Source: Nageia nagi (taxonomy: Eukaryota > Plantae > Pinophyta). From it: a stretch of DNA of 64,000 nt. The first letter of the stretch is position 1. Every line of letters starts with the position of its first letter. The notes under the pieces were generated by a model that was not told the origin of the DNA, made no database searches, and saw only the letters and a program-made list of their open reading frames with translations. A program made the position numbers and the translations under genes. Location: positions 65,286,001 through 65,350,000 of the forward strand of contig JBITNC010000001.1 in the NCBI GenBank assembly GCA_050084985.1. Direction: 5' to 3'. Positions 1-60,539 of this stretch are shown piece by piece.

Positions 1-654
1 GAAGGTATAAATTTCCTCCTTCTTGGTTATTTTTTGGATTATTGCATTATCCTACTAACATATTATTTGTTATGTGTTAGTTTTTTTTTTAAGCAAAATA
101 TGATCAAAATAGCATTATAATGATTTTTTTTTATAGTAACCTCTCATGTTAGTTGTAATTTGTTTTAAAACAATTGCCTAATATATTGACATATTTTCTA
201 TTTAGGAGGATAGTATACAAAATATTTTTACCTTAAAAAGTTATTTTTATCCTTTTAAGCTTGCTTAAAAATAAAGGGTTACATTTTTTTACAAAAATAT
301 ATATGTATTTTTTGTTTAAATACGCTTTCATTACACAAAAATTGTATAAAAATATTAAAATAAAGATTTATTTCTCTCTACAATTCATATTTATGTATTT
401 CCATCTAAAAATATTTTTGCAATATACAAGTAGTGATGTCTAATTTTTTTTTTGAAATAAAGGTGACTTTTGAAAATTATTTTTTTTGAAATTAATTCAA
501 ATAAGGTAGCTTCTTATGCAAGTTTCCTCTCTCCTATGCAGCTCCTCCATCCATCGCTTCACCCTCCCACTCTCCTCCTTGTTGTTGGCTTCCTAACCCT
601 TGACTCCATCTGCTACACCCTCCTATCCCTCTCCCATCCCTCCTTTTTTTTTTC

Positions 655-915
655 TTCATGGCATGCTTTAAGGATAGCAGTAAAGGTAAATTGATTTGGT
701 TGCCACCCCCCTCATGGCCATCTACGACCTTCCTTTATTGCTCAAGTTTTTCATGCACCCTCTACTACTATGTGATCATTGTTTGCTTTGATCAATTGGA
801 AAGGTGAATTGATTTGGTTGCCCATTGATTGGCCTCCCTCTCTCTTTGTGCAGCTCTACTCATCCAATGCTTGAACACTTTTCCTCCAAATCTTTGTTTT
901 GCACATAGCCCTAGT
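655..915 (-). pseudogene. Captured PPR-gene fragments inside Copia leader (antisense to element)
   Basis: Minus strand reads (G)VQPNQFTFTAILKAC (~661-710), QPNQFTFP (~797-820) and GYVQNKDLEE (~882-911), all typical of plant PLS-class PPR motifs. Confidence 0.6.
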
Positions 916-1611
916 CTAAAGGCCAAAATCTAGGTCATGTGGGTTTATCTTTACATAGGCTATATTTTTTCAGCCCTAGAGTGTCTCATCTCCACCTTTG
1001 TGGCCTCCTTCTCCACTATGACTCCTTGTCATGACTCTTCTCTCCTAAATGTATGTGCCTTTCCTTGATTGGTTTCCTTTTTTTGGTTTAATCCTTGCTC
1101 CAAGCCTAGTGTCCTTATCCAAAATTTATTAAGGGACATGAAGAGTCCTTGTCATCTTTTTTGTTAGGTAAAGTCTTTAATTTTTTTTTTGAATCTTATA
1201 CACTTTCTTCCTTTAGTTGATGTCCTTCTCATTTAAGACTTTGACTTAGAGTGAAGTAAGGTTTTCACCTTGACCTTTAATCTCTTGCATATAATCCTCT
1301 TTTTTTTCAACCATTTAATGCTTGGAGGATTTAATGACTTTTTTTTATAAATAGAAATTTATTTTACAATAATGGTAAGTATCTTTAGTGTTAATTATTT
1401 AATTAAAATTAAAAGTAGTTTTTTTAGATCAACTTGATCAAATTCAAAGTATAAAAAGGAGGAAAAGGGGGAATATTTGTTTTTAATGCAAGTATTTTTT
1501 TAATTTCTTTAGTTAAAATTATAAGGTCAAAATTAGTATACTATATTTAGGGGATATTTTTTTTAAGTAAAAGAGGGGAATTTTGTTTAAAATTTACTTA
1601 AAATATTTATC

Positions 1612-1790
1612 TAGATGATGCATGCTTAGGACTTCAATTTTTTTAATGATGCATGCTAGGACTTAAATTTTTTAAGTTAATGATGCATGCTTAAGACTTA
1701 AAATTTTTTAAGCTAATGATGCATGCTTAGGACTCAAAGTTTTTAAGTTTATGATGTATATGACCTAATTCCTTAAGATGCATGCTTCTT
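1612..1790. repeat. ~33-36 bp imperfect tandem repeat (ATGATGCATGCTTAGGACTTAAATTTTTTAAGTTA), ~5 units
   Basis: Units are directly visible; a degenerate homologous array lies at ~6865-7030 in copy 2. Confidence 0.85.
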
Positions 1791-1924
1791 ACTTATTAAG
1801 TATTTATACTTATGCAAAGTTAACTTATGAAAATCATGGAATTAATGCATATTTATGCATAAGTACTTATCATTTTTTTTTGTAAAGTTAACTTGTGCAA
1901 AATATGGACCTATGAAAAACATCC

Positions 1925-2493
1925 TTTAGGGGTTAGTAAACAAAACCCATTGGACTCTTAAGGTTTCAAATTTTGAATAGATGATGTTTTACTTATACTC
2001 TTTACTTCATATTTTGTATTTTGATTTATTTTCTTATGCAAATATTGATATGAGCAACCCCTAAAATGAACACATCCACACGTACATTCTATAACATGAC
2101 TTGTTTGGGGATCCATGAGGTGAGGACAAGCAGACTAGAGCCTTTAAGTTCGATGATCCAAATGGTGAGAAGCCCATACTTCTCAATTATCTTTAGTTCT
2201 TCTATTGGTCTGGACATAACTCTAATAGGTGGATAGGAATGTGTGTAGCGATACCACATATCTGCACATCTATTTAAGGATTATTCTGACAACCTAGGAG
2301 GATAACTTGAAATAATAATTAAGATTAATAATTTGGTTGATATAATAAACATCATAATCTTGAAAAATAGTAGGTACTCCTTGTTAGAGTATAATACTAA
2401 TCAAGGAAAATTAGTTAAGAATTGGTAGTACTTGGGCTCTTCTTAGTGGGCATATAGGTGAAGGCCTAATTTTTAGATAAGAAAACAAGCCTC
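1925..2493 (+). ncRNA. Conserved structured cis-RNA in Copia leader, copy A
   Basis: Much better conserved with 7098-7665 than the flanking leader. Paired segments TTTAGGGGTT/AACCCCTAAA, a GCGA tetraloop at 2248-2251, and a TAGGT-GAAG-GCCTA hairpin at 2455-2468. Confidence 0.65.
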
Positions 2494-2677
2494 AACAATG
2501 TTACTCTACATATATGATTCTTGGTGATGACAAAAGTATTTGGGTACATGGGATGTATATTTGAGTTGTAAAATATTTGCACTTGTAAATCAAATCAAGC
2601 ATATCTTAGTTAAATGTAACATGTAATATTGTTTATTAAATCACATGCTTATTATTTTTCACATTCTTATGTAGTAA

Positions 2678-4429
2678 ATGAGAGAATATTTTTAATTCAA
2701 ACACATTCTTGATAGTTCCAACTTTGGTATTTTGGAACCTCAGATGAGAGCTGAATTATAGGTAAGGAAGCTTTGGTAAACAGTGAGTGAGAACCTTGTA
2801 CCTCCTATAGATGAGAAGGTATTAGAGGCTTACAACATGAAGAATGAGTTGGTAAGCTCCATGATCTTCTATGCAATTTTAGATGATGTGCTCTTGATGA
2901 TTTCCTTTTCAACCTTGGTAAAGGAAGCTTAGGATAAGCTTAAGCAAATCTACCTTGGTTTAAACTTTTCAAGAAGGTTTACCATTATCTAAAATTTGCT
3001 TCAATCTTATCAAGGGGAAGATGAAAATGTGGCTATCTACTTGAATAAAATCATTGACCTAAGGACCCAACTTGTTATTTGTGGATGCAATTGGATCAAT
3101 GATGAGTTTATGGTCTTTATAATTCTCTAAAGCCTTTCCTCAAAGTTTGGTAACTTTATGACAGTTATGGAAACAAGGCTTGATGATGAATAAGAAGTCT
3201 TCTTCTTTGAGAACCTCTTTAGGCTCCTTTTGAATCATGAGGAAACCTTTAACAAAAAGGTGTTGATTGCTTCTTCTAAGGATAATAATGTTGCTCTTGG
3301 AGCAACCAAAAACCTTTCAAGGAGAAGTTCAACCATCAAAAGAAACCTTATTCTTCTTCTTCTAAAAGGTTTGAGAAAAGAGGTAATGGCAACAACAACA
3401 ACAGGAACAACAACAATAATAGCAAGAACAATAGCAACAATAACCACTTCAAGCAAAGAGATGGAAAAGACAAAAAAAACAATCCATATCTTAAGGAAAT
3501 ATTTTATGATAATTGTAACTATTGTGGTATCCAAGGTCTCAAAGAAGTTGATTGCTATAAAAAGAAAAGAAAGGAAAAAAAACAAAGGTAATAGAAATGT
3601 AAAGAACTTTAAAGGAAAGAAGAATATTTGAGCTAGTTTTGCTATGGTGCTCTACTCTATGTCTAGCATTTTTTTATCTAATTGGATTGTTGACTCTAGG
3701 TTGCACTAATCATTTATGTTTCAAAAAGGAAAATTTAGAGAACTTTCACAAGTATAGAAAAGATTTAATTGTGATAAATGATAAATCTACCCTTGAAGTC
3801 CAAGGAATTGGAAGTGTTGATTCATGGGAAGGTTCTTGATAATGTGCTCTATATTCCTAAGCTTAGGATGAACCTTCTCTTTATGATCCAAGTTACTAGA
3901 AAAGGCTACTTTTTGTGTTCAACTATCAATTCTGGTGCATTAAGAAAGGACTTGCCACTTTGTTTAAAGGATCAATGAAAGATGATCTCTACATTGTAGA
4001 TCAAGTTTTATCAAAGATGTGTCTTGCTACAAATGTGTGTTCTAGAGGTAATCTTTGGCACCAACATTTAGGGCACCTTAACCATAAGAGTATTCATATT
4101 ATGAAAGACCAAAAATTTATGGAAGGTTTGCCTTCATTTTCTTCTTCAATTGGTCTATGTAAAAAGTGCATTCTTGGCAAGATGCATAGATAAAGGTTTC
4201 AAAAAGATAAGGCAACAAGAGCACCTCAACCTCTTCAACTTGTGCATTCAAATTTCATGGGTCCATTTGAAACTAAGTCACTTGAAGGAGCATCTTATAT
4301 CTTGATCTTCATTGATGACTTTATTAGAATGACCTTTAGGTATCTACTTGAGCATAAGGATCAAACCTTTGAGAGTTTTAAGATTTTTAAGGCCTTTACT
4401 AAGAATCAAACTACCTTTAAAATCAAGAT
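2678..4429 (+). pseudogene. Copia gag-pol (gag, protease, partial integrase), with multiple stops and frameshifts
   Basis: ATG at 2678 sits at the same position as 7800 in copy 2. ORF fragments 3230-4429 match the copy 2 proteins. Confidence 0.9.
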
Positions 4430-4529
4430 NNNNNNNNNNNNNNNNNNNNNNNNNNNNNNNNNNNNNNNNNNNNNNNNNNNNNNNNNNNNNNNNNNNNNNN
4501 NNNNNNNNNNNNNNNNNNNNNNNNNNNNN
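4430..4529. other. Assembly gap (100 N)
   Basis: Run of N. Confidence 1.
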
Positions 4530-4654
4530 TTTAGAGTAAGATTACTCTACTAGTTTGTGTAGGAGAGAAAGGAATTATTGTAAGAGGGTGCATAGATTGA
4601 GAATTGAGATCTAGTTGTGGATGTACTCCCAAGGAGGGAGGAATCACATTATAT

Positions 4655-4667
4655 TGGTATCAAGAGC
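4655..4667 (+). promoter_or_regulatory. Primer binding site (initiator Met-tRNA), with 1-nt insertion
   Basis: TGGTATCAAGAGC versus canonical TGGTATCAGAGC, directly after LTR-like sequence; positional equivalent of 58036-58048. Confidence 0.8.
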
Positions 4668-5349
4668 TTGGTGTGAAAGTTGTTCTTCTTGGTGTGAAAG
4701 CTTTTCTTTTTGGTGTGGAAGCTACATCTTGGTGATCCTTCTTCATTCCTCATCTTACACCCCATTGGTGAGGTAAAACTAAGAGAAGGTATAAATTTCC
4801 TCCTCATTTGGTTATCTTATGGATTATTACATTAGATACTAACATATTTTATGAGATATTGAAGCTTATTTTTGCAAAATATGATCAAAATGGCAATGCA
4901 AGCAATTTTTTCCCATACTAACCTCTTATGTTAGTAGCATTTTTTTTACAAAATGCTTAATACATGATATACCTTTTAAGAGGATACTATGTAATGCAAA
5001 TATTTTTACTAACATTTTGTTTGTTAGTAGCATTGATTAATAACTCTATTACAAGCATTGCCAAGGTGTAATATTTACATAATACTTTATTTTTTCTCTA
5101 AATTTTTTTATTTTTGCAAAAATTTTAATGCAAATAGAGGGAAATAATTTTTAGAGGCAATTTATTTAAATTTTAAAGCAAATATGGGGAAAAAGTTTTT
5201 TTTTAAGATGTAATTTATTAAAAAATAAAAAAAAAGAACATAGCCACCCCTACAGACTCGCAGCTCCTGCCGCTTGGCCTCCCCTGTCGCCTCCTCAGCA
5301 CCACCGTGCCAATCACCACCGTGGGGCTAGACTGCTATTAGATTTGGAG

Positions 5350-5482
5350 CTCGAGGAAGAAGCACCAGATGAAGGGTCGTCTCCTTCTAAATGTTGTAGT
5401 CAGTAAGGGTTTGTCCATCTTCCATCTCCTTCCCAGCAAATATTAACCTCTGCTGATCAGGAGGGATGCCCTCCTTGTCTTG
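5350..5482 (-). pseudogene. UBQ: Captured ubiquitin fragment (residues ~31-71), antisense in Copia leader
   Basis: Translates [40 protein letters not shown], 35/41 identical by my count to plant ubiquitin 31-71; CAG>TAG stop at 5387-5389. Confidence 0.95.
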
Positions 5483-5659
5483 ACGAATCACAGGATAAAC
5501 ATAAACTCGTGCTTATTAAATGTTGCAACTTTTTCAAAGCGGAGTCCGTGTATGTTTGTTTGAGATCATGAAATTCCCCCCTTTTTTGAACCTATGTGTA
5601 TTATTTCTCCAAGCCCCTTCAGCTTAGCTTCAATTAGTTACAGTTTTCACTACTTGAAC

Positions 5660-5823
5660 TGTGGAGCAGGCATTTCACAAATCTATCTACTTTTGGATCG
5701 GAGCATAATCTTGCTGCAAAATTCATGGCAGAAATGATGCACTGCTCTGTCTGTCATGTATTTGATAGAGCACTATCCATTCAAAAAAAAATCCATGGTG
5801 AGAATGAATTCCACAGTTCCTGA
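5660..5823 (+). pseudogene. Possible captured TPR (kinesin-light-chain/NPHP3-like) fragment
   Basis: Reads ..NLSTFGSEHNLAAKFMAEM..FDRALSIQKKIHGENE, resembling the 'RALxIxxKxxGxxH' TPR motif; degenerate. Confidence 0.35.
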
Positions 5824-5933
5824 GCTTCATTACGAGGCACAAACTATCATCTTTTGGGAAAGAAACTACCGCACTCTGAGCTATGCACATGACCCTCCAC
5901 TCGTTGTGCACGTAACCCTCCACTTTAATGTCT

Positions 5934-6128
5934 ACTCTCCAACACCATGTCATGTTTGGCGTGGCCGTACTAGAATAGCATCGGTAGATTGATCTGCAGT
6001 ATTTCATACACCGTGGAGCACACCAATGCCATGCTCTCTAGCATTGTAATGTTTAGCTGCCCCCCATTTGCTTTGATCGCATCTCGAACTTCATGTGCAA
6101 GATCGAGGTGGAGCTCTTTGCCCGCGAC
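5934..6128 (-). pseudogene. AOS: Captured CYP74 (allene oxide synthase-like) fragment, antisense in Copia leader
   Basis: Translates AGKELHLDLAHEVRDAIKANGGQLNITMLESMALVCSTVYEILQINLPMLF*YGHAKHDMVLES. This matches the CYP74 J/K-helix region (H.RLA.EIR..IK.NGG.L....EKM.L..SVVYE.LR..PP...QYG.AK.D.VIES). Confidence 0.88.
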
Positions 6129-7097
6129 CATCTCAAACATCTACTCTTCTCCCTACCGTAGCCCTCTTCTTCTCCCTTTGCATCTTCTCCTTGACATTGC
6201 CCTCCTTGTCTTTGTGCATTTAATTTTTCTTTATGCATTTAATTTTTGTTGACTACTTTTTACCTTCTTTAAATGCATTTCCAAAAGCAACGTATGCTCT
6301 TCTTGGTAGAAGAAAAAGGGGGGGTCATTTTTTTAAGTACAAACATTCATTTTTGACTTTTTTGGAATGCTTTGGTAAAATAGCATTAACTATGCATGGG
6401 TCACCTTCTTTTTCATTAATACTTGCAAGCTCTCTAGAAGCAAACGTATACTTTTTGATAGGCATTTAATATTTTTGCTTACTTACAAGTCATTTGTTCC
6501 TATTAAATGCACTTAGAAGTACTTATACTCCAACTTTAAGCATTGACTATAATACTTTAAAGTAAGTAGATACATCATTACTCTTCAATGCAATTCCAAA
6601 TTTTTTTTGTGGCACATGGAGGATATTTTGGAGTATAATTTTTTTCTCTAAGTATGGTAATTTACTTAGGCAAAACGTTTTTAGTAAATTTTTTTTGCTA
6701 AGGTAATCTAAGTATGCTATTTTTAAGTAAACAAGGGAAATTTTTTACTTAAAGTATAAATGCATACTTAAAAGACAATTTTTTTAGCATACAAGTTTTA
6801 GGGATAAAACTTTAAGTAAAAAAGGGGGAATTTGTATAATTTTTTTTTACTTAAAACTTTATCTAGATCTTGCATGCTAAACTTGTAATGCATGCCTCTT
6901 ACTCTTGTGTAGGAATGAAGCATGCTTAGTACTTAAAATTTTTAAGTTAAATAATGCATTTTTTAAATGATGCATGTTTATTACTTAATTTTTTAAGTTA
7001 TGGATTAATGCTAAGTAGGACTTAGCCTTTTTTAAATTCATTAAAGTGTTGAATGAATTTATGAACTTGAGCAAGTATGCAAAATGTAAAAATGTCC

Positions 7098-7665
7098 TTT
7101 AGGGGTTAGTACAAAACCCATTGGACTCTTAAGGTTTCAAATTCTTGTGGATGATGTATTTTTAATACTTTACTTTATATTTTTGCATAATTGCTTTATA
7201 CTTGCAAAATGCAAAATATTGAAAGTAACCCCTAAAATGAACACATCCGCACGTACTTTTCCACAACATGACTTGTTTGGGGAGCCACGAGGTGAGGACA
7301 GGGCAGACTAGAGCCTTTTTAGTCCGAAGAACTAAGTGGTGGTAAATCCATCTTAATTACCCCTAAGACCTCTGTTGGATTGGACATAACTCTATTAGGT
7401 GGATAGGCATGTGTGTAGTGATACCACATGTCTGCACGTCCATTCAGGGATTATCTTGATAACCTAGGAGGAAAACTTGAAAACCTTAACAAGATAATTA
7501 AAATGGCCGATCTAAGATACGTCGGATCCTTGGAAAATAGTTGGTACTTCTCCTTGAAAGAGTATATTACTGACCAAGGTGAATTGGTTGAGGACTGGTA
7601 GTACTTGGGCTCCACTTTGCAGGCATCTAGGTGAAGGCCTAATTCTATACAAGAAAACAACCTCA
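7098..7665 (+). ncRNA. Conserved structured cis-RNA in Copia leader, copy B
   Basis: 11-bp pairing 7098-7108/7226-7236; GTGA tetraloop stem (7418-7421); ATTATCTTG/CAAGATAAT; TGACCAA/TTGGTTG; TAGGT-GAAG-GCCTA at 7628-7641. Confidence 0.7.
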
Positions 7666-7799
7666 ACTTTATCCTTCTACGGATCTTGGTTTATAAGTTT
7701 GCACATGTGGGACATATTTACTTATCAATGTTTGATTTGTATAGATGGTAAATTGTAAAAATTTATTCATTCTTCTTGCTTATTTACTTTTATGTAGCA

Positions 7800-8768
7800 A
7801 TGGTTGAAACCTTCATACCCAAGCATATACTCGATGGTTCCAACTTCGGCATATGGGAACCTCGTATGAAAGCTGAGTTACAAGCAAGGAAGCTATGGCA
7901 GACAGTTAATGAAGACTTGGTCGCTCCTACAGATGAGAAGGCTCTTGAAATCTACAACTCAAAGAATGAGTTAGCAACTTTAATGATTTATCGTGCAATT
8001 TCAGATGATGTACTTCTCATGATCTCTTCTTCAACATCAGCAAAGGAAGCTTGGGATAGGCTGAAGAAAATTTACCTTGGGTCAAAATTTTCAAGGAGGT
8101 TCACCATTTTACAAAAGTTGTTGCAATACCATCAAGGTGAAGATGAAAGTGCTTCTATTTACTTGAACAAAATCATTAACCTCCGGACACAACTGGTTGG
8201 CTGTGGGTGCAACTGGATCAATGATGAGTTCATGGTCTTCATCATTCTTCAAAGCCTTTCTACAAATTTTAGTAACTTTATCATGGTTATGGAAACTAGG
8301 TTCGATGATGAAGAAGATGTCATCTCTCTTGATAACCTTTCTAGACTCCTTCTAAAGCATGAGGAAACTTTGAATAAGAAAATGTTGAACTTTTCTCTAA
8401 AGGACAATAACATTGCTCTAGGAGCAACCAAAACTCCTTTCAAGAAGAAGTTCAATCATTATAAATTCAAAGATAACAAATCCTCATCTACCTTCAAGAA
8501 GCATGAGAAAAAGGGCAACAATAATGGCAACTTCATGCAAAGGAATGACAAAACTAGATCAAGCAATCCAACACCTAAGAAAAAGTTTGATGGAAATTGT
8601 AACTTTTGTGGTATCTTTGGGCACAAAGAGTATGATTGTCGTAAAAAGAAATTTGCTCAAAAAGGTAAGGGAAATGCAAATATGAAAAATTTCAATAATA
8701 AAAAGAAGACCAAGCATGCTGCTACGTACTATTGCCTACTACTCAATGACTCAAACTATTTCAAATGA
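7800..8768 (+). CDS. Copia Gag (UBN2-type domain, CCHC zinc knuckle)
   Basis: Open ORF with LDGSNFGIW..M, SAKEAWDRL and CNFCGIFGHKEYDC; ends after a frameshift at the gag/PR junction. Confidence 0.88.
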   Translation: MVETFIPKHILDGSNFGIWEPRMKAELQARKLWQTVNEDLVAPTDEKALEIYNSKNELATLMIYRAISDDVLLMISSSTSAKEAWDRLKKIYLGSKFSRRFTILQKLLQYHQGEDESASIYLNKIINLRTQLVGCGCNWINDEFMVFIILQSLSTNFSNFIMVMETRFDDEEDVISLDNLSRLLLKHEETLNKKMLNFSLKDNNIALGATKTPFKKKFNHYKFKDNKSSSTFKKHEKKGNNNGNFMQRNDKTRSSNPTPKKKFDGNCNFCGIFGHKEYDCRKKKFAQKGKGNANMKNFNNKKKTKHAATYYCLLLNDSNYFK

Positions 8769-10615
8769 TTGGATTATTGATTCAGGATGCACTAATCACA
8801 TGTGTTATGAAAAGGATAAGTTTGAAAACTTTCATAAGTACAAGAAGGATGCAGTTGTGATAGGTGATAATTCAGTTCTTGATGTTCAAGGAATAGGGAG
8901 TGTGAAGATTCATGGAAAGGTTCTTGATAATGTCTTTTATGTGCCTAAATTAAGGATGAATCTTATCTCCGTAATTCAGATTACAAGGAAAGGATGCTTA
9001 TTTGAGTTTACCTCACACTCCTGGTGTGTTAAGAAAGGACTTGCCACCTTGATGAAAGGATCACTAAAGGATGACCTTTATATTGTGGATCAAGTTCCTT
9101 CAAAGATGTGTCTTACTGCAAATGTTTGTTCAAAGGGTAATCTTTGGCATCAATGATTAGGGTACCTCAACCACAAGAGTATTCAAGATATGAAAAATCA
9201 AGAACTTGTGGAAGGTTTACCTAATATTTCACCCACAATTGGTCTTTGTGAAAGGTGCATTCTAGGAAAGATGAATAGGCAAAAGTTTGAAAAAGATAAG
9301 GCAACTCAGGCTACTCGTCCTCTTCAACTTGTGCATTCAGATTTGATGGGTCCATTTCAGACTAAGTCTCTAGGGGGAGCTTCTTATGTTCTGACCTTCA
9401 TTGATGACTTCAGGAGGATGACATTTGGTTATCTACTTGAGCACAAGGATCAAACTTTTGACAGGTTTAAAGACTTCAAGGCTCTTGTTGAAAATCAAAC
9501 TGATTTTAAGATCAAGATGCTGAGATCTAATAATGGGGGTGAGTATAATAGCAATGAGTTTAATGACTATTGTGTTAAACATGGGATCAAGCGGTAATTC
9601 ACAATCCCTTACACCCATCAACAAAATGGAGTTGCTGAAAGGAAGAATCGAACCATTATGGAAATGGCAAGGTGCATGTTGGGTAACCTTCCTAGTTTCT
9701 TATCGGGTGAAGCTATTCACACTGCTATTCACACCCTAAATAGGTGTCCTACTAAAGTAGTTGAAGGTAAAACTCTGTATGAAGCATGGACAGGAAAGAA
9801 ACCTAACATCTCACACTTTAGGGTCTTCGGTTGTGATGCATTTGCCTTCATTACCTCAAAGAAAAGAAAGAAGTTGGATAAAAGATTAGAAAAATGCATC
9901 TTTGTGGGGTATGATAATCAGCATAGAGGTTACAGGCTCTACTCCTCATCCCATAAAATAGTCTTTATTTCTAGGGATGTCAAGTTCAATGAACTTCCTG
10001 AGGATACGACTTCTCATGCTGAGGTGTCTGATTCAGATGATTCTTCGCCTACACCTAACTGGTTGGATGATAATGTAGGGAAGTCACCACAAGAGCAAAA
10101 TTCTCCAGCTCAGATAATTACAAGGAGTATGACCTTGAATAAATCTTTATTTTCCAAAATTGATAATACGAATGAGCCATCAACCTTCAAAGAAGCTTCC
10201 AAGAAAGAGTGTTGGATGGAAGCTATGAAAGTTGAGTATGAGGCGCTCATGAAAAATGAAACTTGGGATTTGGTTCCTTATCCCAATGAGAAAAATCTGA
10301 TTGGAAATAAATGGATATACAAGGTCAAGTACAATTCTGATGGAGAAATTGAAAAATACAAAGCAAAGTTAGTGGCTAAAGGATTCGCTCAAAAATATGG
10401 TATTGATTATGAGAAAATCATTATGTTGTGCAGAAGTTTGGAATGGAGTGTAGATATGTTACGATCCTAGTCTCTCTTGAAATCATTATTTCTCCAAGCT
10501 CCAACTCTTAGTTAGCTGATGCTATAGCTTATAGGTAATCTTTTATATTTGACTATTTTCAAGTCAAATATTGCCTTTGCAATGAATCTAATGGCTCAAT
10601 TCATGCAAAAACCAT
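8716..10615 (+). pseudogene. Copia pol (PR, INT, RT with internal deletions; RNaseH missing)
   Basis: Motifs WIIDSGCTNHM, LVHSDLMGP, NGGEY, QQNGVAERKNRT, KCIFVGY, EPSTFKEA and KAKLVAKGFAQKYGIDYE. The sequence then jumps to an RT C-terminal remnant (NLLYLT..NIAFAMNLMAQFMQKP). Stops at 9154 and 9595. Confidence 0.92.
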
Positions 10616-10771
10616 ATTTGGCAAAGTAGTGAGTCTCAAACTAGATCTTTCTTACTTCACAAATATGTAAAGAGTTCTCATTTCCATTGTATCTATTTGG
10701 AGGAGAACTCTCTTACTTTGTCTCTTTCTTCTTTCTTATTTGCTCTATCCTAATATTGCATTAAGGGGGAG

Positions 10772-11270
10772 TGTTGGAATGTATAATGCATTATTGTAAA
10801 GGTTATGTAATAATCTTCTATATAAGTTCACTAATACTTAAGGGTATCATTTGATACCTTAAGTATTTAAATGAATATGTTAATGTAACTTATCCTACAC
10901 TCCATGTCATGAGCATGCCCCTTGGGTAAAAGGATGTGCATATCATGCTTTTGTACATTGGATAAAAAGGTAATCTAAAGAGGGATTTTGGCCTATAAAT
11001 AGAAGGCTCCTTCTTTGAGATCACACACCAATTTGTGAAGTAAAGTTATGCTATAGGATAGTGTTTAGGAGATGAATTAGAAGAATTGTAAGAGATTCAT
11101 ATTTATGAATGAAATGAGATCAAGTTAGTGGATGTACTCCTAATTGGAGGAACCACTTACATCTTATGTCACTTTATGAGATTGTCTTCTTAAGTTATCT
11201 TGATGTTAGTATGAGCTTTCATGTGATCTTGAGAGTTTAGAGTTGTTTAGTTTATAGTTCAATTCTCTCA
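10772..11270 (+). repeat. 3' LTR, Copia family A
   Basis: TGTTGG...CTCA after the PPT; CCTATAAATAG TATA box at ~10992; homologous to 32951-33440 and 57525-58033. Confidence 0.9.
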
Positions 11271-11380
11271 AAAATAACATGTGACTATCATGTCATAGGA
11301 TGTCGATGCATTCCTGTGTGTGAAATATTTTCCAATTTTTTTTTTTTGTATGTGGATTATTGTGCTTCTTTCCCTTAAAT

Positions 11381-11975
11381 TTTCTAGTGGATGCGATTCA
11401 TTATAGATGAGCATCTATAATCCATTAGAAATGGACATCTATAAAAAAAATAGATTTTGAATTTCTGACATAACATAATAATAAGCATTTACAATCCTTA
11501 GGTGATGGTCATATTAAAGTTGAAATACCCTACCTAATGAGTGTTTGATTTCTCTAACAGAAAAGCATCTACAATTCCTCATATATGAGTATCTACAATC
11601 CTGCATAAATGAGATTCTACAATCTTGTATAGATGAGTATCTACAATCATATTAAAGTTGAAATACCCTACCTGATAAGCATTTGATTTCTCTAACAAAA
11701 AAGCATCTACAATTCCTCATATATGAGTATCTACAATCTTGCATAAATGAAATTTTGCAATCTCGTATAGATGAGCATCTACAATCTTGCATAAATGAGC
11801 ATCTATAATCTTACAAAGATGAGCATTTGCAATATCACATAGATGAGCATTTGCAATCCCACATAGATGAGCATATGCATTCTCGCACAAATAAGCATTT
11901 GGATTTCTTGATTATCAAGCACCCGTAATCCCTCACAAACAAGTGTTTGTAATCACTCACAAATGAGCATCTTAG
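11381..11975. repeat. ~22-bp tandem array with palindromic AGATGAGCATCT core, probably CACTA-type subterminal repeats
   Basis: Repeated (A/G)ATGAGCATCTACAATC units; higher-order ~140-bp duplication (11510-11650 vs 11650-11790); inverted repeat at 11381-11431. Confidence 0.7.
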
Positions 11976-12299
11976 AGAACTTGAAAATTTAAAATGTTGG
12001 TATATATGATATAATCTCATAAAATTTATATATAGGGTATAATTGGTGATTTCATTGATAAAAAGTAAATTTTTTTTTATTTTCAAGGTGATTGCTTGCA
12101 AAAATATTGGAGGTAAAAGTGGTTATTTACACTTATCTTTATAAAAAATTAATAAAATGTTAGCTACCTGATCCATAAATTTTTTAATCATGTAAAATTT
12201 AGGCTAAATGGTGCAATATCTGAGGTTCAAATTTTTGAAATATTTAAACATTAAAATTTTTTATATTAGTTGATTGGCTAATATTCACTGTTATGCATA

Positions 12300-14056
12300 A
12301 TGCTTCTTGGAATGTTAGGGGGTTTCATCCCCCATTGACTCTAGGTCTAGTTAAATCTTTATTCCATCATGAGAAACTAACTACACTACTTATCCAAGAA
12401 TCAAAGATTCAATAGGAAGATCTATAGAAACTTAAGAATAAATTTTGGTCAAATAGTTTCATTTTCCATAGTTATGCCTTTGAACAATCTGGTGCTATGC
12501 TTATTCTTTAGGATAGCCCACTTATATCTTACACCCTAGAACACTCCAACCAATTTTGATGGCTACCTTTGTACATTTCCTATATATAGGTAAACACTTT
12601 ATTTTGATCAATATTTATGATCCTCATCCACGTACTCATAAGCGGGAGATTTGGAATTAAATCTTAGGATAGGGTCAAATTTTAGGAGAATTTCCCTACA
12701 TCATCAAAGGGCACTTTAATATTATTAGGCATATAAGAAAAAGGATAGGTAGGTCAAGGAAATTGGAGCCCATCTTGAATGAATTTATAGATCAACTACA
12801 TATAATAGAACCCTTTTGCATCAATGGATCTTGTACATGGTCCAATAAATAATAAGGTGATCAAAATATATAAGAGAAACTAGATAGATTTTTTCTTACT
12901 CTCAATTGGTATGAGTAGGAATCAACTCTACAAACAAAAATCCTACCCTATGGTAGATCTAACCATTGGCCAGTAGGTTTGTAGTGGTACGTTCCAACTA
13001 GACTAAAATTGATTCCCTTTAGATTCCAAAGGATATGGCTCCTTTACCCCTCATTCAATGAATTAGTGGAAGCTTGCTGGAAGGAGGAAGATAGCATTTA
13101 AAGGACTACAATGTTCAAATTTATAACTAAACTACAAATATTGAGAGCTAATCTTAAAAAAGGAACAAATAGGACTTCAAGGATGTGTTGTAAATGAAGG
13201 AAAAGCTAGAAATATACCTTCAAGAAATATAATCTCAAATGCTAAGATCCAAAAATGGTAATCCTCTTGGTTTGGAAAGATAGATAAAGCATGATTTAGA
13301 GAGAATATACCTCCAAGAAGAGATTTTCTAGAAGTAGAAAGCTAGAATCTAATGGCTCTAAAAATGGGATAAAAATACTAGGTACTTTAATCTCATAGCA
13401 ATGGCTCATAGAGCCCAAAATAGAATCTCCTACTTGGTAACCCAATTAGGTTACCATCTCTCTACAATAGAAGAAATGGAAAATCACATTCTTTCATACT
13501 TCCAAGACCTTCTCTTAAAGGAGGAAAATCAAAGAAATGAAGCTCCAATACAAATACTAAGATCAATCCCAAAATTAGTCTCCCCTACTCAAAATTAGTT
13601 TCTATTATACCCAATCCAAGAAGAAGAAGTAAAAGCAACTTTCTTCTAATTGAAACCCTCCAGTTCCCTTAGCCTAGATGGATTCCTTCCTAGTTTCCTC
13701 CAATACTTTTGGTGTTTGCTAAAGGATGAAATCACTATAGTAGTATGAGAATCATTCTCCTCCAAAAAGATGCTTGGTAAGCTAAATCATACTTTCTTAG
13801 TGCTCATACCTAAATATGAGGAACCTAAAAAAATTGATTCTTTAGACCAATTTCCCTTTACAATGCAATCTATAAAGTTACCTTAAAAGTAGAAGTCAAC
13901 AAAATTAAAAAAATCCTTCTTGACATTATTTCAAAGGGAAAAAAAAAGCATTTTTCAGTGGGAAAACACATTTCAAATAGAGTGGCCATAATCCATGAAC
14001 TAATTCACTCCATAAACATCAAGCAAAAAAAGGATCTTATTAAAATTAGATATGAC
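12300..14056 (+). mobile_element. Degenerate L1-type LINE ORF2 (AP endonuclease to start of RT)
   Basis: Motifs in order across frames: SWNVRG, IQESK, INIY, EKLDRFF, SNHWP, FRFQ..WL, DKNTRYF, DGF, LNHTFLVLIPK, RPISL.NAIYK, IKLDM. Confidence 0.88.
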
Positions 14057-14059
14057 ACC

Positions 14060-15130
14060 ATTTATTAGTAGGAGATACCATTCCATTCTTCTTATATGGA
14101 TTATTATTATTCTTATATTGGTACAATTTTGGGTGAAGCTTCCAACATTTTTCATCCACATGACCATCCTTGCCATAATTTAAGGAATCCCTACTTTCAT
14201 TTTCTTTCTTTAAATTGTTACAATTTTCTTTTCTTACTGCTTTACCTTGCCTTTTCTTAACATTTGCTCCATTCTTGATATCCTTATAATTTGGATTCTT
14301 CTTGGAGCTTTTATATTATTTTCTTTGCCTCACATATTCTTCCAAATATTGATCTTGCATACTCACTTGGTCAAAGATTAGTAGGACTAAACAACATAAT
14401 AATGTTTTATAAATGATTATGTAATCCTCCAATGTACTTCATCAAAACTTGAGTATGTTTGAGAGAAATCCCAAACAAATTTTCTTATTTTCTAAATTCT
14501 ATAGTATATTATTTGACTATTATCCCCTTTGCTATCTAAAGAATTACTATTTTATGAGTTTCTTATTATGATGACCCAATGGATAAAATTGATCTCTCAA
14601 CAAATTATTGAAATAATCCTAAGAAGAGTTTGACAATTGGTTTTCATATTGTAGAGATTCAACATGGATTTCCCACAAAATCAATTATGACCTCCCAACA
14701 TTAATCATCTAAAGGAAATATTTTGACTATAATTAAGAACATGCTGAATTTGAAAATTTACCTCTAGTTATTTCAAGCAATTATTGAGTTTCTCATCATC
14801 TACCTCCCCTCCAAAAGTGGGGATTTCCATTTTATTCTCTACTTTAAATGGAAGTGAAATGGTGACATGAGTAGTACCTCTAGTATCTAGTATGCTTCCA
14901 TCATTTTCAGGAGTTCTAGCCTCCTCCTTAGATTACCTACATTGCAGCATATATATGATCCTAGCCATGTTATTTTCCATTACAACAAATCTCCTCTAAA
15001 AATAAGACTCTATCAATTTGGGATGTCTTACTTATAGATCATCCATGAGATTTTTTCTTATAAGCCTTCTTCCAATTTCAGGATCAATAGAAAATAACTC
15101 CCCTTTTTGATATCTTCTACCTTGCACTCA
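14060..15130 (-). mobile_element. Degenerate Ty3/Gypsy gag fragment
   Basis: Minus strand LPFKVENKMEIPTFGGEVDDEKLNNCLK*LEVNF resembles the N-terminal Gypsy gag 'IP.F.G..D.EK...W....E..F' motif. Confidence 0.6.
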
Positions 15131-32450: not shown

Positions 32451-32550
32451 NNNNNNNNNNNNNNNNNNNNNNNNNNNNNNNNNNNNNNNNNNNNNNNNNN
32501 NNNNNNNNNNNNNNNNNNNNNNNNNNNNNNNNNNNNNNNNNNNNNNNNNN
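32451..32550. other. Assembly gap (100 N)
   Basis: Run of N. Confidence 1.
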
Positions 32551-32715
32551 CCAGTTCCCCTTGGGTAGCAATATACTCTCACAAGGAGAAGTACTAGCTA
32601 TTTTCCAAGGTTGGATCCAATGTTTATTGGATCAACTAAATTATTAATCTTGAATAGGTTTCAAGTTGTTCTCCTAGGTTATCAGGATAATCCTTAAATG
32701 GACATGTAAGTATGT
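32551..32715 (-). ncRNA. Partial third copy of the Copia-A structured leader, inverted
   Basis: Reverse complement aligns with ~7428-7590 (GGATTATCCTGATAACCTAGGAG..CTTGGAAAATAG..GTACTTCTCCTTG..GAGTATATT); 8-bp hairpin at 32614-32633. Confidence 0.8.
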
Positions 32716-57524: not shown

Positions 57525-58732
57525 TATTGGAATGTATAATGCAATATTATAAGGTTTTGCAATATTCTTCTTTACAAATTCATCGATATTTAAAGTTACC
57601 CCTACATATCTTAAATATTTAAGTGAATATGATAATGTAACTTGTCCTATACTCCTTATGAGCATGCCTTTTGGGTAAAAGGGTGAAACATGTCATGTCT
57701 TTGCACAACAGTTAAAAGAGTGATCCTAGGGAAGATTTTGGCCTATAAATAGAAGGCCCTCTCCTTGTGATCACTCACAAAAATTTGAAGCAAAGATATG
57801 CTCTAAGATTAGTGTTAGGAGAAGAAGAAAGAGGTCTTATAAGAGAATTATGTTTGTGAATAAGAAAGATCTTAGTTAATGGATGGATAGTATTGTATGA
57901 GAGGAACTACTTATATGTGCATCAAATTTGTGAGATTGACTATTATGTTTATGCTTTAAGTATTGATGTTTAAGGGAGATTTCAAGTGATCTTAGTAGAT
58001 TAATATTTTAGTCTTTTATGATTAAAACCTTTATTTGGTATCAGAGCCATCTTGGAGGCATACCTTGGACGTCATTTCTAGTCTTTCTTCCATATTTAAA
58101 GGCTCATTTACATCTTTGTTCAGGTAAAAGATTTAAAGGTATATTTTTTTCTTCCTTAAGATTAGTTTTACCTAATGAGTTACTAACATTGTTATGTGTT
58201 AGTTGTAATTTTTTTTAAAAATAATTCCTACATATTATTGCTATGCAATTTTTTTTACTAACACTATTTTGTTAGTTTCAATTTATTAAAAAAAAAAATT
58301 GCTTAATATATAACAATAATGTTGTCAATTTAATTTGCAATTTTTTAATCACTTACGGAATTTTTGGAAATTTTTTATTACAAGTTTAATAAAATTTATA
58401 AAAATTTTAAGAAAAATTGCAATTGATTTGTCACATTATTATTGCATGTTATTTTAGGAATATTTTTTTGAGAGGGGCTTTATACATTATAATTTATTTT
58501 ATTTACATTAAAAAGGGAGGAGGAAGTGAAAAACCTCAATCTATATGTATAATACAAGTAAGAGGAATTAGTTGCATAAAAAGAACTGCAATTTTTTTAT
58601 TTCCATTCTAAAGGGGGGCCTTTTTTGTTTCATCTTCATAATGTACTTTTAAAATATATATATTACATATTATAAAAAAAGGGAAATCTTTTATTTTAAA
58701 AAATATTAGAAAAATACCCTCAACAATTTTTG
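57525..58732 (+). mobile_element. Copia family A copy 4: 5' LTR (57525-58033), PBS (58036-58048), start of leader
   Basis: LTR homologous to 10772-11270; canonical TGGTATCAGAGCC; donors CAG|GTAAAA (58123/4) and AG|GTATAT (58138/9). Confidence 0.88.
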
Positions 58733-60538
58733 GGGGATACCTATTCAAGGTGTAAATTGCGGTACTTACAGCTTCACCCCAAAGAAACTAGGAAGATTTT
58801 CCAACATACATCTAGACATCTTTATGGTTATCACATTTTCCTTTTGATAACATTATTTTCTGAGAGGTGTAAGGAATCATAAACAACCTTTTGATCTTGT
58901 ACTTGGCATGAGATCATTAAACTCATTGTTGTTATCTTCACCCACATTATCTAATCTCAACATCTTGATTTTCAACTAAGGCTTTGAAATCTTTGAACCT
59001 ATCAAAGGTTTGATACTTATGCTTAATCAGATAACTAAATGTCATCTTACCTACTTCATCGATGAAGGTCAAGACATAAGTTCTCCTCCAAGCAACTTAG
59101 TCTAAATAGAATTATCAAATCTAAATGCACAAGCTGAAGAGGTTGGGTTTCCCTTATTACATTATCTTTTTCAAACCTTTATCTATTTATATTACCTAGG
59201 ATGCACTTCTCACATAACCAATTATGGATGAAATCAAAGGCAAACCTTTCACAAGTTCTTTGTCTTTCATGACTTGAATATTTTTAGGTTATTTATGGTT
59301 AAGGCGAACTAAATGTTGGTGCCAAATATTTCTCTAGAGAAAACATTTGTTGTAATACATATCTTTGTTGGAATTTGATCTAAATGTAGAGATTATTTTT
59401 CACTAATCCTTTCACCATAGTGGCAAGTCCCTTCTTAATGCATTAGGAGTGTGAGTTGAATTCAAATGAGTATTCTTTCCTTAAATTTGAATTATGGAAA
59501 GAAGGTTCATATGGAGCTTAGGCACATAGAGCATATTTTTAAGAACATTTTTGTGAATCAACACACTCCCAATCCCTTGGACTTATGGATTGAATTTTCA
59601 CTTATCACAACTGCATCCTTTCTATACTTATAAAAATTTTCAAACTTATCCCTTTCGAAGCATAAATGATTAGTGCATTTAGAATCAGTAATCCAATTAG
59701 TTGAGAATGTGTGATTCATGGAGTAAAGAATATAAATAAAACCATTTTTAATTTTCTTCTTCCCTTTGAAGTTCTTCGCATTTCCATTTTCCTTATTCTT
59801 TTCTTCTCTTTTTTTTTTTGTAGCAGTCAAATTCTTTTGACATAGCCACCACAAAAGTTATAATTTTCATTGAATTTTACCTTAGGATTTGGTTTGGTTT
59901 GTCTTACCCTTTCCATATCTCTGTTTGTATTTGTTATTTCCCTTCTTCTCAAACTTCTCGGAGGTAGCAGAAAAATATTTTTTTTGATGCTTGAACTTCT
60001 TCTTGAAAAGAGTTTTAGTTGCTCCTAGAGTAACATTATTGTACTTTTGAGAAGAGATCAACATCTTTTTGTTAAGAGTTTTCTCATGCTTCAAAAGGAT
60101 CTTTGAAATTATGGTTCTCAAGACTAAGAGAGAATACTTCTTCGTCATCATCAAGCCTAGTCTCAATAACTATCACAAAGTTACTAAACTTTGAAGAAAA
60201 GCTTTATAGAATGATGAAGACCATGAACTCATTATTGATCCAATTGTAGCCAAAACCAACAAGTTGGGTCCTAAGGTTAATGATCTTGTTTAAATAGATG
60301 GAAACATGTTCATCTTCCTCTTGATGAGATTAAAGCAAACTTTGGAGAATGGTGAACCTTCTTCAAAATTTGGTCTTTAGTTAAGTTTTCTTAAGCCTAT
60401 CCCAAGTTTCCTTTGCAAAGGTTGATGAAGACATCATAAGCAACACTTTGTCTAACACTTCACAAAAAATCATAGAGGTTTTCAATTCATTCTTTGTGTT
60501 GTAAGCCTCAAGTGCCTTCTCATATATAGTAGTAACAA
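58733..60538 (-). pseudogene. Copia family A gag-PR-INT segment inverted relative to the adjacent LTR
   Basis: Minus strand runs from EKALEAYNTKNEL through LLKHEKTLNKKML and WITDSKCTNHLCF to CMLENLPSF..EAVSTAIYTLNR; homologous to 7918-9750. Confidence 0.9.
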
Positions 60539-60539
60539 T

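Follow-up and report, generated by a model that had tools for sequence, protein, structure and literature searches.

Unrelated GC-rich islands in the 5′ leader intron of a Ty1/copia family: a possible hypervariable region

Two Ty1/copia copies in a 64,000-nt window of Nageia nagi DNA (the whole stretch analysed here) carry, between shared leader sequences, GC-rich blocks that are unrelated to each other. This observation was partly confirmed, and it reaches beyond the window to related elements. The explanation that we favor, at about an even chance of being correct, is that one Ty1/copia family has a hypervariable region (HVR) in its 5′ leader intron and that the blocks are local cases of it. 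The site is a replaceable region, and its role as a reservoir of antisense host genes is unproven; the interpretation given in a sequence-only reading, that of a slot for host-gene cargo, is partly supported. If the HVR reading is true, the type of hypervariable region described in gypsy 3′UTRs would also occur in a copia 5′ leader intron, and the way in which retroelements produce and withstand the replacement of whole stretches of sequence could be studied in a second, independent system.

The two copia copies and their leader intron

The features of the window are listed in Table 1. The elements were classed as Ty1/copia by a copia-type gag and by domains in the order gag - integrase - reverse transcriptase, together with LTRs, a primer binding site (PBS) and a polypurine tract. 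The left end of copy 1 lies beyond the window start, its gag-pol contains stops, and its integrase is interrupted by a gap of N. To the left of the gap (to 4429), the gag-pre-integrase/integrase region of copy 1 aligns to copy 2 position 9518; to the right, 4530-4654 is the end of the copy 2 5′ LTR, and the PBS starts at 4655. An integrase of copy 1 on one side and an LTR of copy 2 on the other indicate two different elements, and the two sides are neither continuous nor in frame. Neither GC-rich block (505-1157 and 5237-6230) reaches the gap. In copy 2, Pfam detected Retrotran_gag_2 at 7800-8765 and integrase SH3 followed by RVT_2 at 9658-10467, and the polypurine tract and 3′ LTR were located near 10764-11270. 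The PBS, TGGTATCA, is also present in 7 relatives. Copy 2 is structurally damaged by a U5 deletion, the 5′ LTR being without about 105 nt present in relatives and in its own 3′ LTR, and by an RT deletion that left only the first 55 of 244 RVT_2 positions. LTR pairs were found in L013, L017, L019 and L025, and all elements with both LTRs are old (pairs 90–96% identical).

Table 1. Coordinates of the features in the window
Feature	Position	Strand	Evidence
Copia copy 1	1..4429	+	73% alignment to copy 2; gag_pre-integrase Pfam match 3900-4190
Copy 1 leader intron, donor GAAG/GTATAA at 5, acceptor TGTAG/ ending 2674	5..2674	+	boundaries conserved across 8 elements
16-nt exact direct repeat, 441-456 and 1178-1193, around copy 1 island	441..1193	+	repeat search
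Copy 1 island	505..1157	+	43% GC, 66% pyrimidine, 13 C3+ vs 2 G3+ runs
PLS-type PPR-like motif, 17 residues, weak	616..711	-	Pfam PPR_2 E=0.026; PDB synthetic PLS-PPR
Assembly gap (N)	4430..4529	.	between copy 1 integrase and end of copy 2 LTR
3′ end of copy 2 5′ LTR	4530..4654	+	LTR comparison
PBS, tRNA-Met type, TGGTATCA...	4655..4667	+	comparison with relatives
Copy 2 leader intron, 3009 nt	4789..7797	+	conserved boundaries; intron-less relative L020
Copy 2 island, host-gene mosaic between C-rich ends 5237-5340 and 6140-6230	5237..6230	+	composition
Ubiquitin fragment, ~residues 31-74, one internal stop	5355..5481	-	Pfam PF00240 E=2e-12
15-nt exact direct repeat, 5467-5481 and 6198-6212	5467..6212	+	repeat search; ubiquitin homology ends exactly at 5481
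Piece(s) of expressed host sequence	5509..5879	.	RNA and DNA contig matches
CYP74A (allene oxide synthase) fragment, frameshift and stop	5930..6128	-	PDB 2rch/2rcm, E=1e-6; translation
Conserved leader domain, ~580 nt, intronic	7088..7667	+	74–80% identity to all relatives
Copy 2 gag-pol, degenerate	7800..10771	+	Pfam; ORF list
Copy 2 3′ LTR, polypurine tract just before	10772..11270	+	LTR ends of relatives

The two leaders share a left flank (1-231 and 4785-5009, 75% identity) and a right flank (1915-2496 and 7088-7667, 79% identity). The right flank had been proposed to begin farther left, but similarity between 1320-1561 and 6615-6810 was no higher than that of shuffles. It is therefore supported only from about 1562/6811, and the unalignable span is 232-1561 versus 5010-6810, which exceeds the GC-rich blocks in size. 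As had been noted, these blocks are GC-rich (42–50% GC, versus about 20–27% in the surroundings) and unrelated, with no similarity over shuffled controls on either strand.

Judged from sequence, the leader intron is real. The leader consists of the PBS, a first exon of about 70–135 nt and an AT-rich GT-AG intron of 2–3.5 kb. In 8/8 elements, the donor AG/GTATA(A/T) lies about 70–135 nt past the PBS and the acceptor TGTAG/ lies 2–3 nt ahead of the ATG (2 nt upstream of the gag ATG in copy 2). Two relatives, L020 and L021, carry the exact exon-exon junction with the intron absent, and L020 is the sister of the long-leader element L017 (support 97/96), nested inside the long-leader clade (100/100). 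These findings agree with the earlier placement of the variable site within a putative intron. The spliced joint 4788->7798 was absent among the 15 joints listed, presumably from RNA runs. Of its non-coding sequences, the family has conserved the ~580-nt intronic domain best, and the highest contig depth in run X6 was also found on it.

The intron-less relative is natural, though indirect, evolutionary evidence of leader splicing and bears on the split between RNA for translation and RNA for packaging. In retroviruses, a splice donor lies upstream of the packaging signal. The copia element BARE has distinct RNA pools, and splicing inside its coding region favors Gag (PMC3735527). As in BARE and retroviruses, splicing of the present leader would part translated RNA from packaging-bound RNA; unlike that of BARE, the intron lies wholly in the 5′ leader and includes a conserved domain and the putative HVR.

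Islands across the family

The islands compared were those of both window copies and of seven related elements from metagenome contigs. An island of 0.2–1 kb (191 to 994 nt) was present in 9/10 elements, L019 being the one without. Where the left flank was complete (seven elements), islands started 440–586 nt past the conserved donor (mean 506 nt, sd 54), within leader introns of 2.2–3.5 kb. By hand estimate, seven independent uniform insertions would cluster this tightly about once in a million, so independent random insertions are very unlikely. The leader position, which had been called fixed, is thus a similar site across the family but not a nucleotide-exact one. When the nine islands were compared with one another, no detectable similarity and no common termini were found. 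The proposal that the site varies family-wide was supported. Since elements with unalignable islands are up to 87% identical in gag and align at 70–80% in the right intron part, wholesale replacement is indicated and not mere drift.

Common to the nine islands is a strand-asymmetric composition, C-run-rich and mostly pyrimidine-rich, and not gene origin. Runs of C3+ occur at 11–42 per kb in 9/9 islands versus 1.3–3.5 per kb in the rest of these elements, 8/9 islands show no G3+ enrichment, and the sense strand is 58–69% pyrimidine in 7/9 (the exceptions being L013 and L025). That nine islands without common sequence show such asymmetry is a sign of either a biased mechanism or selective filtering, and each is testable. 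The idea that the slot is filled mainly by host-gene fragments did not hold, the usual content being short repeats or C-rich filler: host-gene pieces were proven in one island, that of copy 2, while three are arrays of short tandem repeats and four gave no Pfam match. One of these four was searched against 1.84 billion representative proteins, and no plant protein matched.

A hypervariable region, often with short tandem repeats, is described for the 3′UTR of Ty3/gypsy elements of the Tat/Ogre type (Macas et al. 2009, cited through PMC7004042). The two regions are alike in occupying a fixed non-coding place where sequence and length vary between elements. As to repeat content, tandem arrays make up 3/9 islands here and not the rest. 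They differ in that the Tat/Ogre region belongs to the 3′UTR of the gypsy Tat lineage and the present one to a copia 5′ leader intron, and in that the islands here are C-run-rich on the sense strand, at least one of them with host-gene pieces.

Turnover of the HVR might proceed via illegitimate recombination or template switching tied to element replication, each version then being passed down within a sub-lineage. Tolerance of the HVR would follow from its removal from the gag-pol mRNA by splicing and from its position outside the conserved domain. Island content may pass a strand-specific compositional filter: sense inserts that are exon-like, rich in purines or equipped with poly(A) signals would interfere with the intron, C/T-rich sequence would be favored, and antisense coding scraps would be retained as a by-product. 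Inheritance of islands via transposition is suggested by contig depth in 200-nt bins; two distinct copies with one same island were not seen among the DNA compared. The elements with both LTRs are old and copy 2 is damaged, so a later, post-insertion change is possible for any single island.

Host-gene pieces in the window islands

Two of the pieces proposed for the copy 2 mosaic, ubiquitin and CYP74A, were confirmed, both firmly antisense. The third, a TPR-like frame at 5686-5793, gave a weak match that Pfam did not recover, and it lies on the + (sense) strand. Ubiquitin RNA contigs match the window only at 5361-5481, diverging at 5361 and 5481/5482. The CYP74A piece corresponds to Arabidopsis AOS residues 313-361, and the match of a CYP74 RNA contig is limited to 5937-6035. 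Matches of a 709-nt RNA contig and of a 1123-nt DNA contig from another species are confined to the 5509-5879 part, and a strand-switch joint, 5509->5729, was observed between RNA contigs and the window. The 15-nt repeat has its first copy at the very edge of the ubiquitin piece; the pair, with a chance expectation of about 5e-4 (hand estimate), encloses a 716-nt inner part with no poly(A) or poly(T) at its ends. This duplication suggests assembly of the mosaic in at least two steps.

Contig depth along copy 2 was 83k in the LTR, then 15k, 3.6k and 399, fell to 0–14 at 5330-6129 and rose to about 2k from 6130, the flanking leader having about 2,000–15,000 in the public contig sets. This valley indicates that the gene mosaic is private and that the leader and the right end of the island are common to many copies. 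One contig of run X2 spans the join between ubiquitin and the next piece at 94% identity; it could be a second copy or come from another species. As the mosaic is low-copy and its host copy old and damaged, it may be peculiar to this copy and no habit of the family. Within the HVR reading it would be a later low-copy addition inside such an island, made while the element replicated or through repair of a break once it had inserted.

The copy 1 island is unrelated to all other islands. The PPR fragments reported there were reduced to a single PLS-type motif, the good PDB score of the synthetic PLS-PPR arising because that target itself repeats one PLS-PPR unit; a 23-nt repeat (682-704/800-822) may mark a second unit. 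With two firm antisense pieces and this weak one against one weak sense hint, an antisense bias is not established.

Gene capture by LTR retrotransposons is known, Bs1-type transduction being one form, and cargo from classical transduction is in sense orientation. Capture of gene fragments has been described in gymnosperm LTR retrotransposons (PMC13477047), and in maize no LTR element was found with fragments from two or more genes (Baucom et al. 2009, PMC2774510). The copy 2 island resembles these cases in having host coding fragments between LTR and gag; it differs from the maize ones in having at least three pieces, and from LTR gene capture in that capture is here the minority content of a generally variable site. 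If the HVR reading is true, gene scraps annotated in leaders of this kind are for the most part chance contents of a site that varies.

Other origins considered

Several other origins were weighed against the HVR. The islands may be filler added after integration, by break repair or slippage in a break-prone AT-rich, homopolymer-laden mid-leader, and never transposed. Every copy seen is old, copy 2 has other deletions (U5 and RT), its short patches, strand switch relative to donor contigs and 15-nt duplication resemble patchwork repair, and slippage could yield the tandem-repeat islands. We nevertheless regard this origin as possible but unlikely: islands occur in 9/10 elements and start within one zone of about 150 nt (n = 7), random filler in either orientation would hardly give sense-strand C-run richness in 9/9, and the right end of the copy 2 island is multi-copy, at a depth close to that of the adjoining leader.

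Composition itself may be selected, the islands serving as a cis-element, a putative C/U-rich platform for the spliced/unspliced balance or for packaging or host-factor binding. Shared C-run richness in 9/9 unrelated islands, the conserved position and the presence of the 580-nt domain in the same intron agree with this idea, which is rather unlikely given that L019 has no island, that size ranges from 191 to 994 nt and that so extreme a turnover of sequence is unusual for a functional element.

A dedicated slot serially capturing host pieces, preferentially antisense, with putative trans action of RNA or siRNA or camouflage, is improbable. Copy 2 does hold at least three host pieces, two firmly antisense, its duplication suggests two successive acquisitions, and island positions are clustered family-wide; yet gene content is proven in 1/9 islands, the remainder including the repeat arrays and the Pfam-less islands (one without a plant match), the orientations are too few and include a weak sense match, and the gene mosaic is low-copy in a dead copy. 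A combined version, in which the leader-intron site is refilled with foreign RNA or DNA at replication and mostly keeps antisense host scraps, with putative small-RNA cross-talk with donor genes via unspliced genomic RNA, has only a small chance of being right.

That the blocks are nested DNA transposons with gene cargo (Pack-MULE, Helitron) or LINE-mediated retrocopies is very improbable. Pack-MULEs and Helitrons typically show mosaics of short gene pieces, AT-rich DNA is often targeted, and direct repeats lie around island 1 (16 nt) and inside island 2 (15 nt); yet no terminal inverted repeats were found at either block, flanking repeats are at chance level in 6/7 islands tested, no poly(A)/poly(T) bounds the 716-nt inner part and the islands have no common termini. 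Pack-MULEs have long terminal inverted repeats and 9–10 bp TSDs around the gene patchwork, and Helitrons have a 5′ TC, a 3′ CTRR and a 3′ hairpin and insert between A and T. Pack-MULE identity was rejected on the lack of inverted repeats at the block ends and of a consistent TSD; Helitron 5′ TC and 3′ CTRR ends were not noticed when the block ends were read by eye. The copy 2 mosaic resembles these transposons in joining short pieces of several host genes and differs in the lack of TIRs, of regular TSDs and of termini shared among islands and in its carrier, a retroelement intron.

The 16-nt repeat around the copy 1 island is the one flanking repeat above chance level. Repeats of at least 15 nt occurred in about 4% of control window pairs (7 islands tested), and the 16-mer alone is not significant; it may stem from target duplication or from microhomology.

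Two damaged copia copies and their leader intron

The first 11.3 kb of the window contains two plus-strand copies, diverged from each other, of a single Ty1/copia family (see table). Copy 1 and copy 2 are both dead, since stops occur in both and, in copy 2, the reverse transcriptase is truncated and the 5' LTR is short in U5. Approximately 105 nt of U5 are missing from this LTR (4530–4667, compared with 11165–11270), which joins the PBS directly; all relatives have this stretch, and so does the 3' LTR of copy 2. The left side of the N gap is the integrase region of copy 1, aligning to copy 2 position 9518, and the right side is the end of an LTR. Being parts of different elements, the two are neither continuous nor in frame, and the adjacency of the copies depends on scaffolding alone.

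Features of the two copia copies and of the host-gene mosaic in copy 2
Feature	Position	Strand	Basis or remark
Copy 1	window start (runs off edge) to N gap	+	alignment to copy 2
gag-pre-integrase (copy 1)	3900–4190	+	Pfam
N gap	4430–4529		between copy 1 and copy 2
Copy 2 5' LTR	directly after N gap	+	final 125 nt
Copy 2 PBS	4655	+	tRNA-Met type
Ubiquitin piece	~5355–5481	antisense	Pfam, E=2e-12
Third host piece	5509–5879		matches to public contigs
CYP74A/allene oxide synthase piece	~5930–6128	antisense	PDB residues 313–361, E=1e-6
Copy 2 gag ATG	7800	+
Copia-type gag	7800–8765	+	Pfam
Integrase SH3, then RVT_2 positions 1–55 of 244 (copy 2)	9658–10467	+	Pfam
Copy 2 3' LTR	~10772–11270	+

In all elements, a splice donor, AG/GTATA(A/T), lies approximately 70–135 nt past the PBS and an acceptor, TGTAG/, 2–3 nt ahead of the gag ATG. 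Two related elements on metagenome contigs, L020 and L021, have a short leader (L020:5531–5725) in which the first exon runs straight into CAATGG, the exact predicted junction. In the gag tree, L020 and the long-leader element L017 are sisters (support 97/96) within a long-leader clade (100/100). On the simplest reading of these sequences, L020 would be a descendant of a reverse-transcribed spliced RNA in which the GC-rich block of the intron (the island, see below) would not have been retained as an exon. Apparently founded from spliced RNA, the L020 lineage is so without the conserved 580-nt domain, the part of the leader intron at 7088–7667 in copy 2. An Rfam candidate for a miRNA precursor at 6782–6882 scored 32.9 bits, below the gathering score of 70, and was dismissed as a local palindrome.

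The window's remaining leader copies either stop short of the island (58036 onward) or are interrupted by a second gap (32551–32715). Another family copy, at 57527–60640, has an LTR, a PBS at 58036 and a donor at 58139, and is lost about 300 nt into the leader; just past it lies a minus-strand copy of the same copia family (gag-pol 60538–58715). Past the second N gap (32451–32550) come a piece of the conserved leader domain on the minus strand (32551–32715) and then, on the plus strand, an LTR region (to 33436) that is 83% identical to 10615–11266.

A variable site in the intron

The sequence-only reading had described a slot for host-gene fragments between leader flanks common to both copies. 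The left flank was confirmed (1–231 and 4785–5009, 75% identity). The right flank, read as ~1320–2680 and ~6615–7800, was supported from ~1562/6811 on but not before that; its first part (1562–1749 and 6811–7035) gave a weak alignment, and its main part (1915–2496 and 7088–7667) aligned at 79%. Between the flanks, 1.3 kb of copy 1 and 1.8 kb of copy 2 could not be aligned, and each span holds, as had been noted, a GC-richer island (island 1, 505–1157; island 2, 5237–6230). The two islands are unrelated when compared on either strand, and both are clear of the N gap. In several elements, the right half of the intron has recurrent AT-rich tandem units of ~30–35 nt that contain ATGATGCATGC (1596–1750, 6900–7040; L011:1101–1193).

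A gag protein search returned only metagenome proteins, approximately 60% identical; relatives were then taken as 33 loci from a gag-alignment scan of metagenome contigs, which may derive from the same plant or from a close relative. All 33 belong to the same family, with gag nucleotide identity to copy 1 of up to 87%. A GC-rich island was present in 7 further distinct elements (L005, L010, L011, L013, L017, L022, and L025), in leaders otherwise of 20–25% GC; L019 was without one, as indicated by leader mapping and the GC profile. No similarity was found between any two of the nine islands, and none had a match elsewhere in the DNA compared.

Seven elements have a complete left flank; in these, whose introns are 2.2–3.5 kb long, the island starts 440–586 nt past the splice donor (506 nt on average, sd 54). 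By our own estimate, such tight clustering would arise about once per million sets of seven independent, random placements. In its right part, the intron aligns at 70–80% even where the islands are unalignable; therefore, the islands have been replaced, not merely diverged. The variable site is real and family-wide, but host genes are not its usual content. Around seven islands, the only find resembling a target site duplication was a 16-mer direct repeat at island 1, not significant after seven tests.

Content of the islands and known parallels

All nine islands are rich in runs of three or more C (11–42 per kb, versus 1.3–3.5 per kb in the remainder of each element); a matching enrichment of G runs is absent in eight of them. 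Sense-strand pyrimidine content is 58–69% in seven, and a canonical G-quadruplex or i-motif pattern occurs in one only. Three of the nine are tandem arrays, with units of 39 and 51 nt in L005, 67 nt (×4) in L011, and 19 nt (×7) in L025. Ten stop-free pieces from four other islands had no Pfam match. A HMMER search of 1.84 billion representative proteins with a 135-residue antisense ORF from the L013 island gave no plant match, returning just that ORF and SdrD-repeat proteins of bacteria; the latter were rejected as chance, with one 32-residue motif and scores inflated by repetitive targets. As for the PPR fragments read in copy 1, one 17-residue PLS-PPR motif, antisense, was recovered, with weak statistics; a 23-nt repeat at a distance of 118 nt may be a second PPR unit.

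Island 2 has C-rich ends (5237–5340 and 6140–6230) with a gene mosaic between them. Its fragments are as short as had been read: real ubiquitin and CYP74 transcripts match just 5361–5481 and 5937–6035, respectively, and then differ. The CYP74A piece contains one stop and one frameshift, and its extension below ~5930, proposed by eye, was unsupported on checking. The third piece is taken as host sequence because 5509–5740 is ~95% like one RNA contig of 709 nt and because 5531–5740 is the sole part matched by a 1123-nt contig of another species, at single-copy depth. Relative to the matching contigs, the window switches strand at 5509/5729, a joint carried by contigs of two runs. In the third piece, a TPR-like frame on the plus strand is weak, with a single weak PDB match and no Pfam match. 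As for the antisense orientation of the three better-supported fragments, two cases are firm (ubiquitin and CYP74A) and one, the PPR motif, is weak. An 18-nt unit is tandemly duplicated at 23-nt spacing in 5884–5924, between the third piece and the CYP74 piece.

Ubiquitin homology ends exactly at 5481, where a 15-nt word also ends; the sole other copy of this word lies at the right edge of island 2 (6198–6212). This duplication brackets the inner 716 nt of the island and suggests that at least two steps were involved.

Capture of gene fragments by LTR elements is well known (PMC2774510, PMC13477047). Copy 2 differs from the LTR elements of maize, none of which held pieces from more than one gene (PMC2774510). 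Among known systems, the site most closely resembles the hypervariable 3'UTR of Tat/Ogre elements, a region of variable tandem repeats that has been credited either to illegitimate recombination or to strand transfer gone wrong in replication (PMC7004042). No published description of the arrangement seen in this copia family was found in partial coverage of the literature. The site's position, in an intron and away from the conserved 580-nt domain, may explain why it is tolerated. Its C/T-richness could be maintained by a filter or bias that is strand-specific, and antisense coding scraps would then be favoured without serving any purpose. The site may turn over either during replication or once the element has inserted; all LTR pairs seen are only 90–96% identical, and copy 2 is damaged.

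Contig depth across the mosaic

Contigs of four public runs were aligned to 4530–10500 at 80% likeness; all four are contig sets, and their RNA or DNA labels are guesses. In run X2, depth descended from 83,000 at the LTR/PBS through 15,000 and 3,600 to 399, was 0–14 over 5330–6129, and rose to ~2,000 from 6130 and to 50,000–120,000 from 7130. The valley over 5330–6129 indicates that the host-gene mosaic is low-copy, and the high depth on both sides that the surrounding leader, including the C/T-rich right end of island 2, is common to many copies. The join of the ubiquitin piece to its neighbour is spanned by a single X2 contig at 94% identity, indicating that the mosaic is real DNA and no assembly artefact; this contig may be a second copy or another species' orthologue. 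None of the 15 joints listed skipped the block or was spliced.

In run X6, from another species, the conserved domain at 7088–7667 was the most abundant part of the family, with a depth of 1.36 million at 7330–7529 versus 0.1–0.7 million across gag-pol. Non-autonomous derivatives or other families may also carry this domain.
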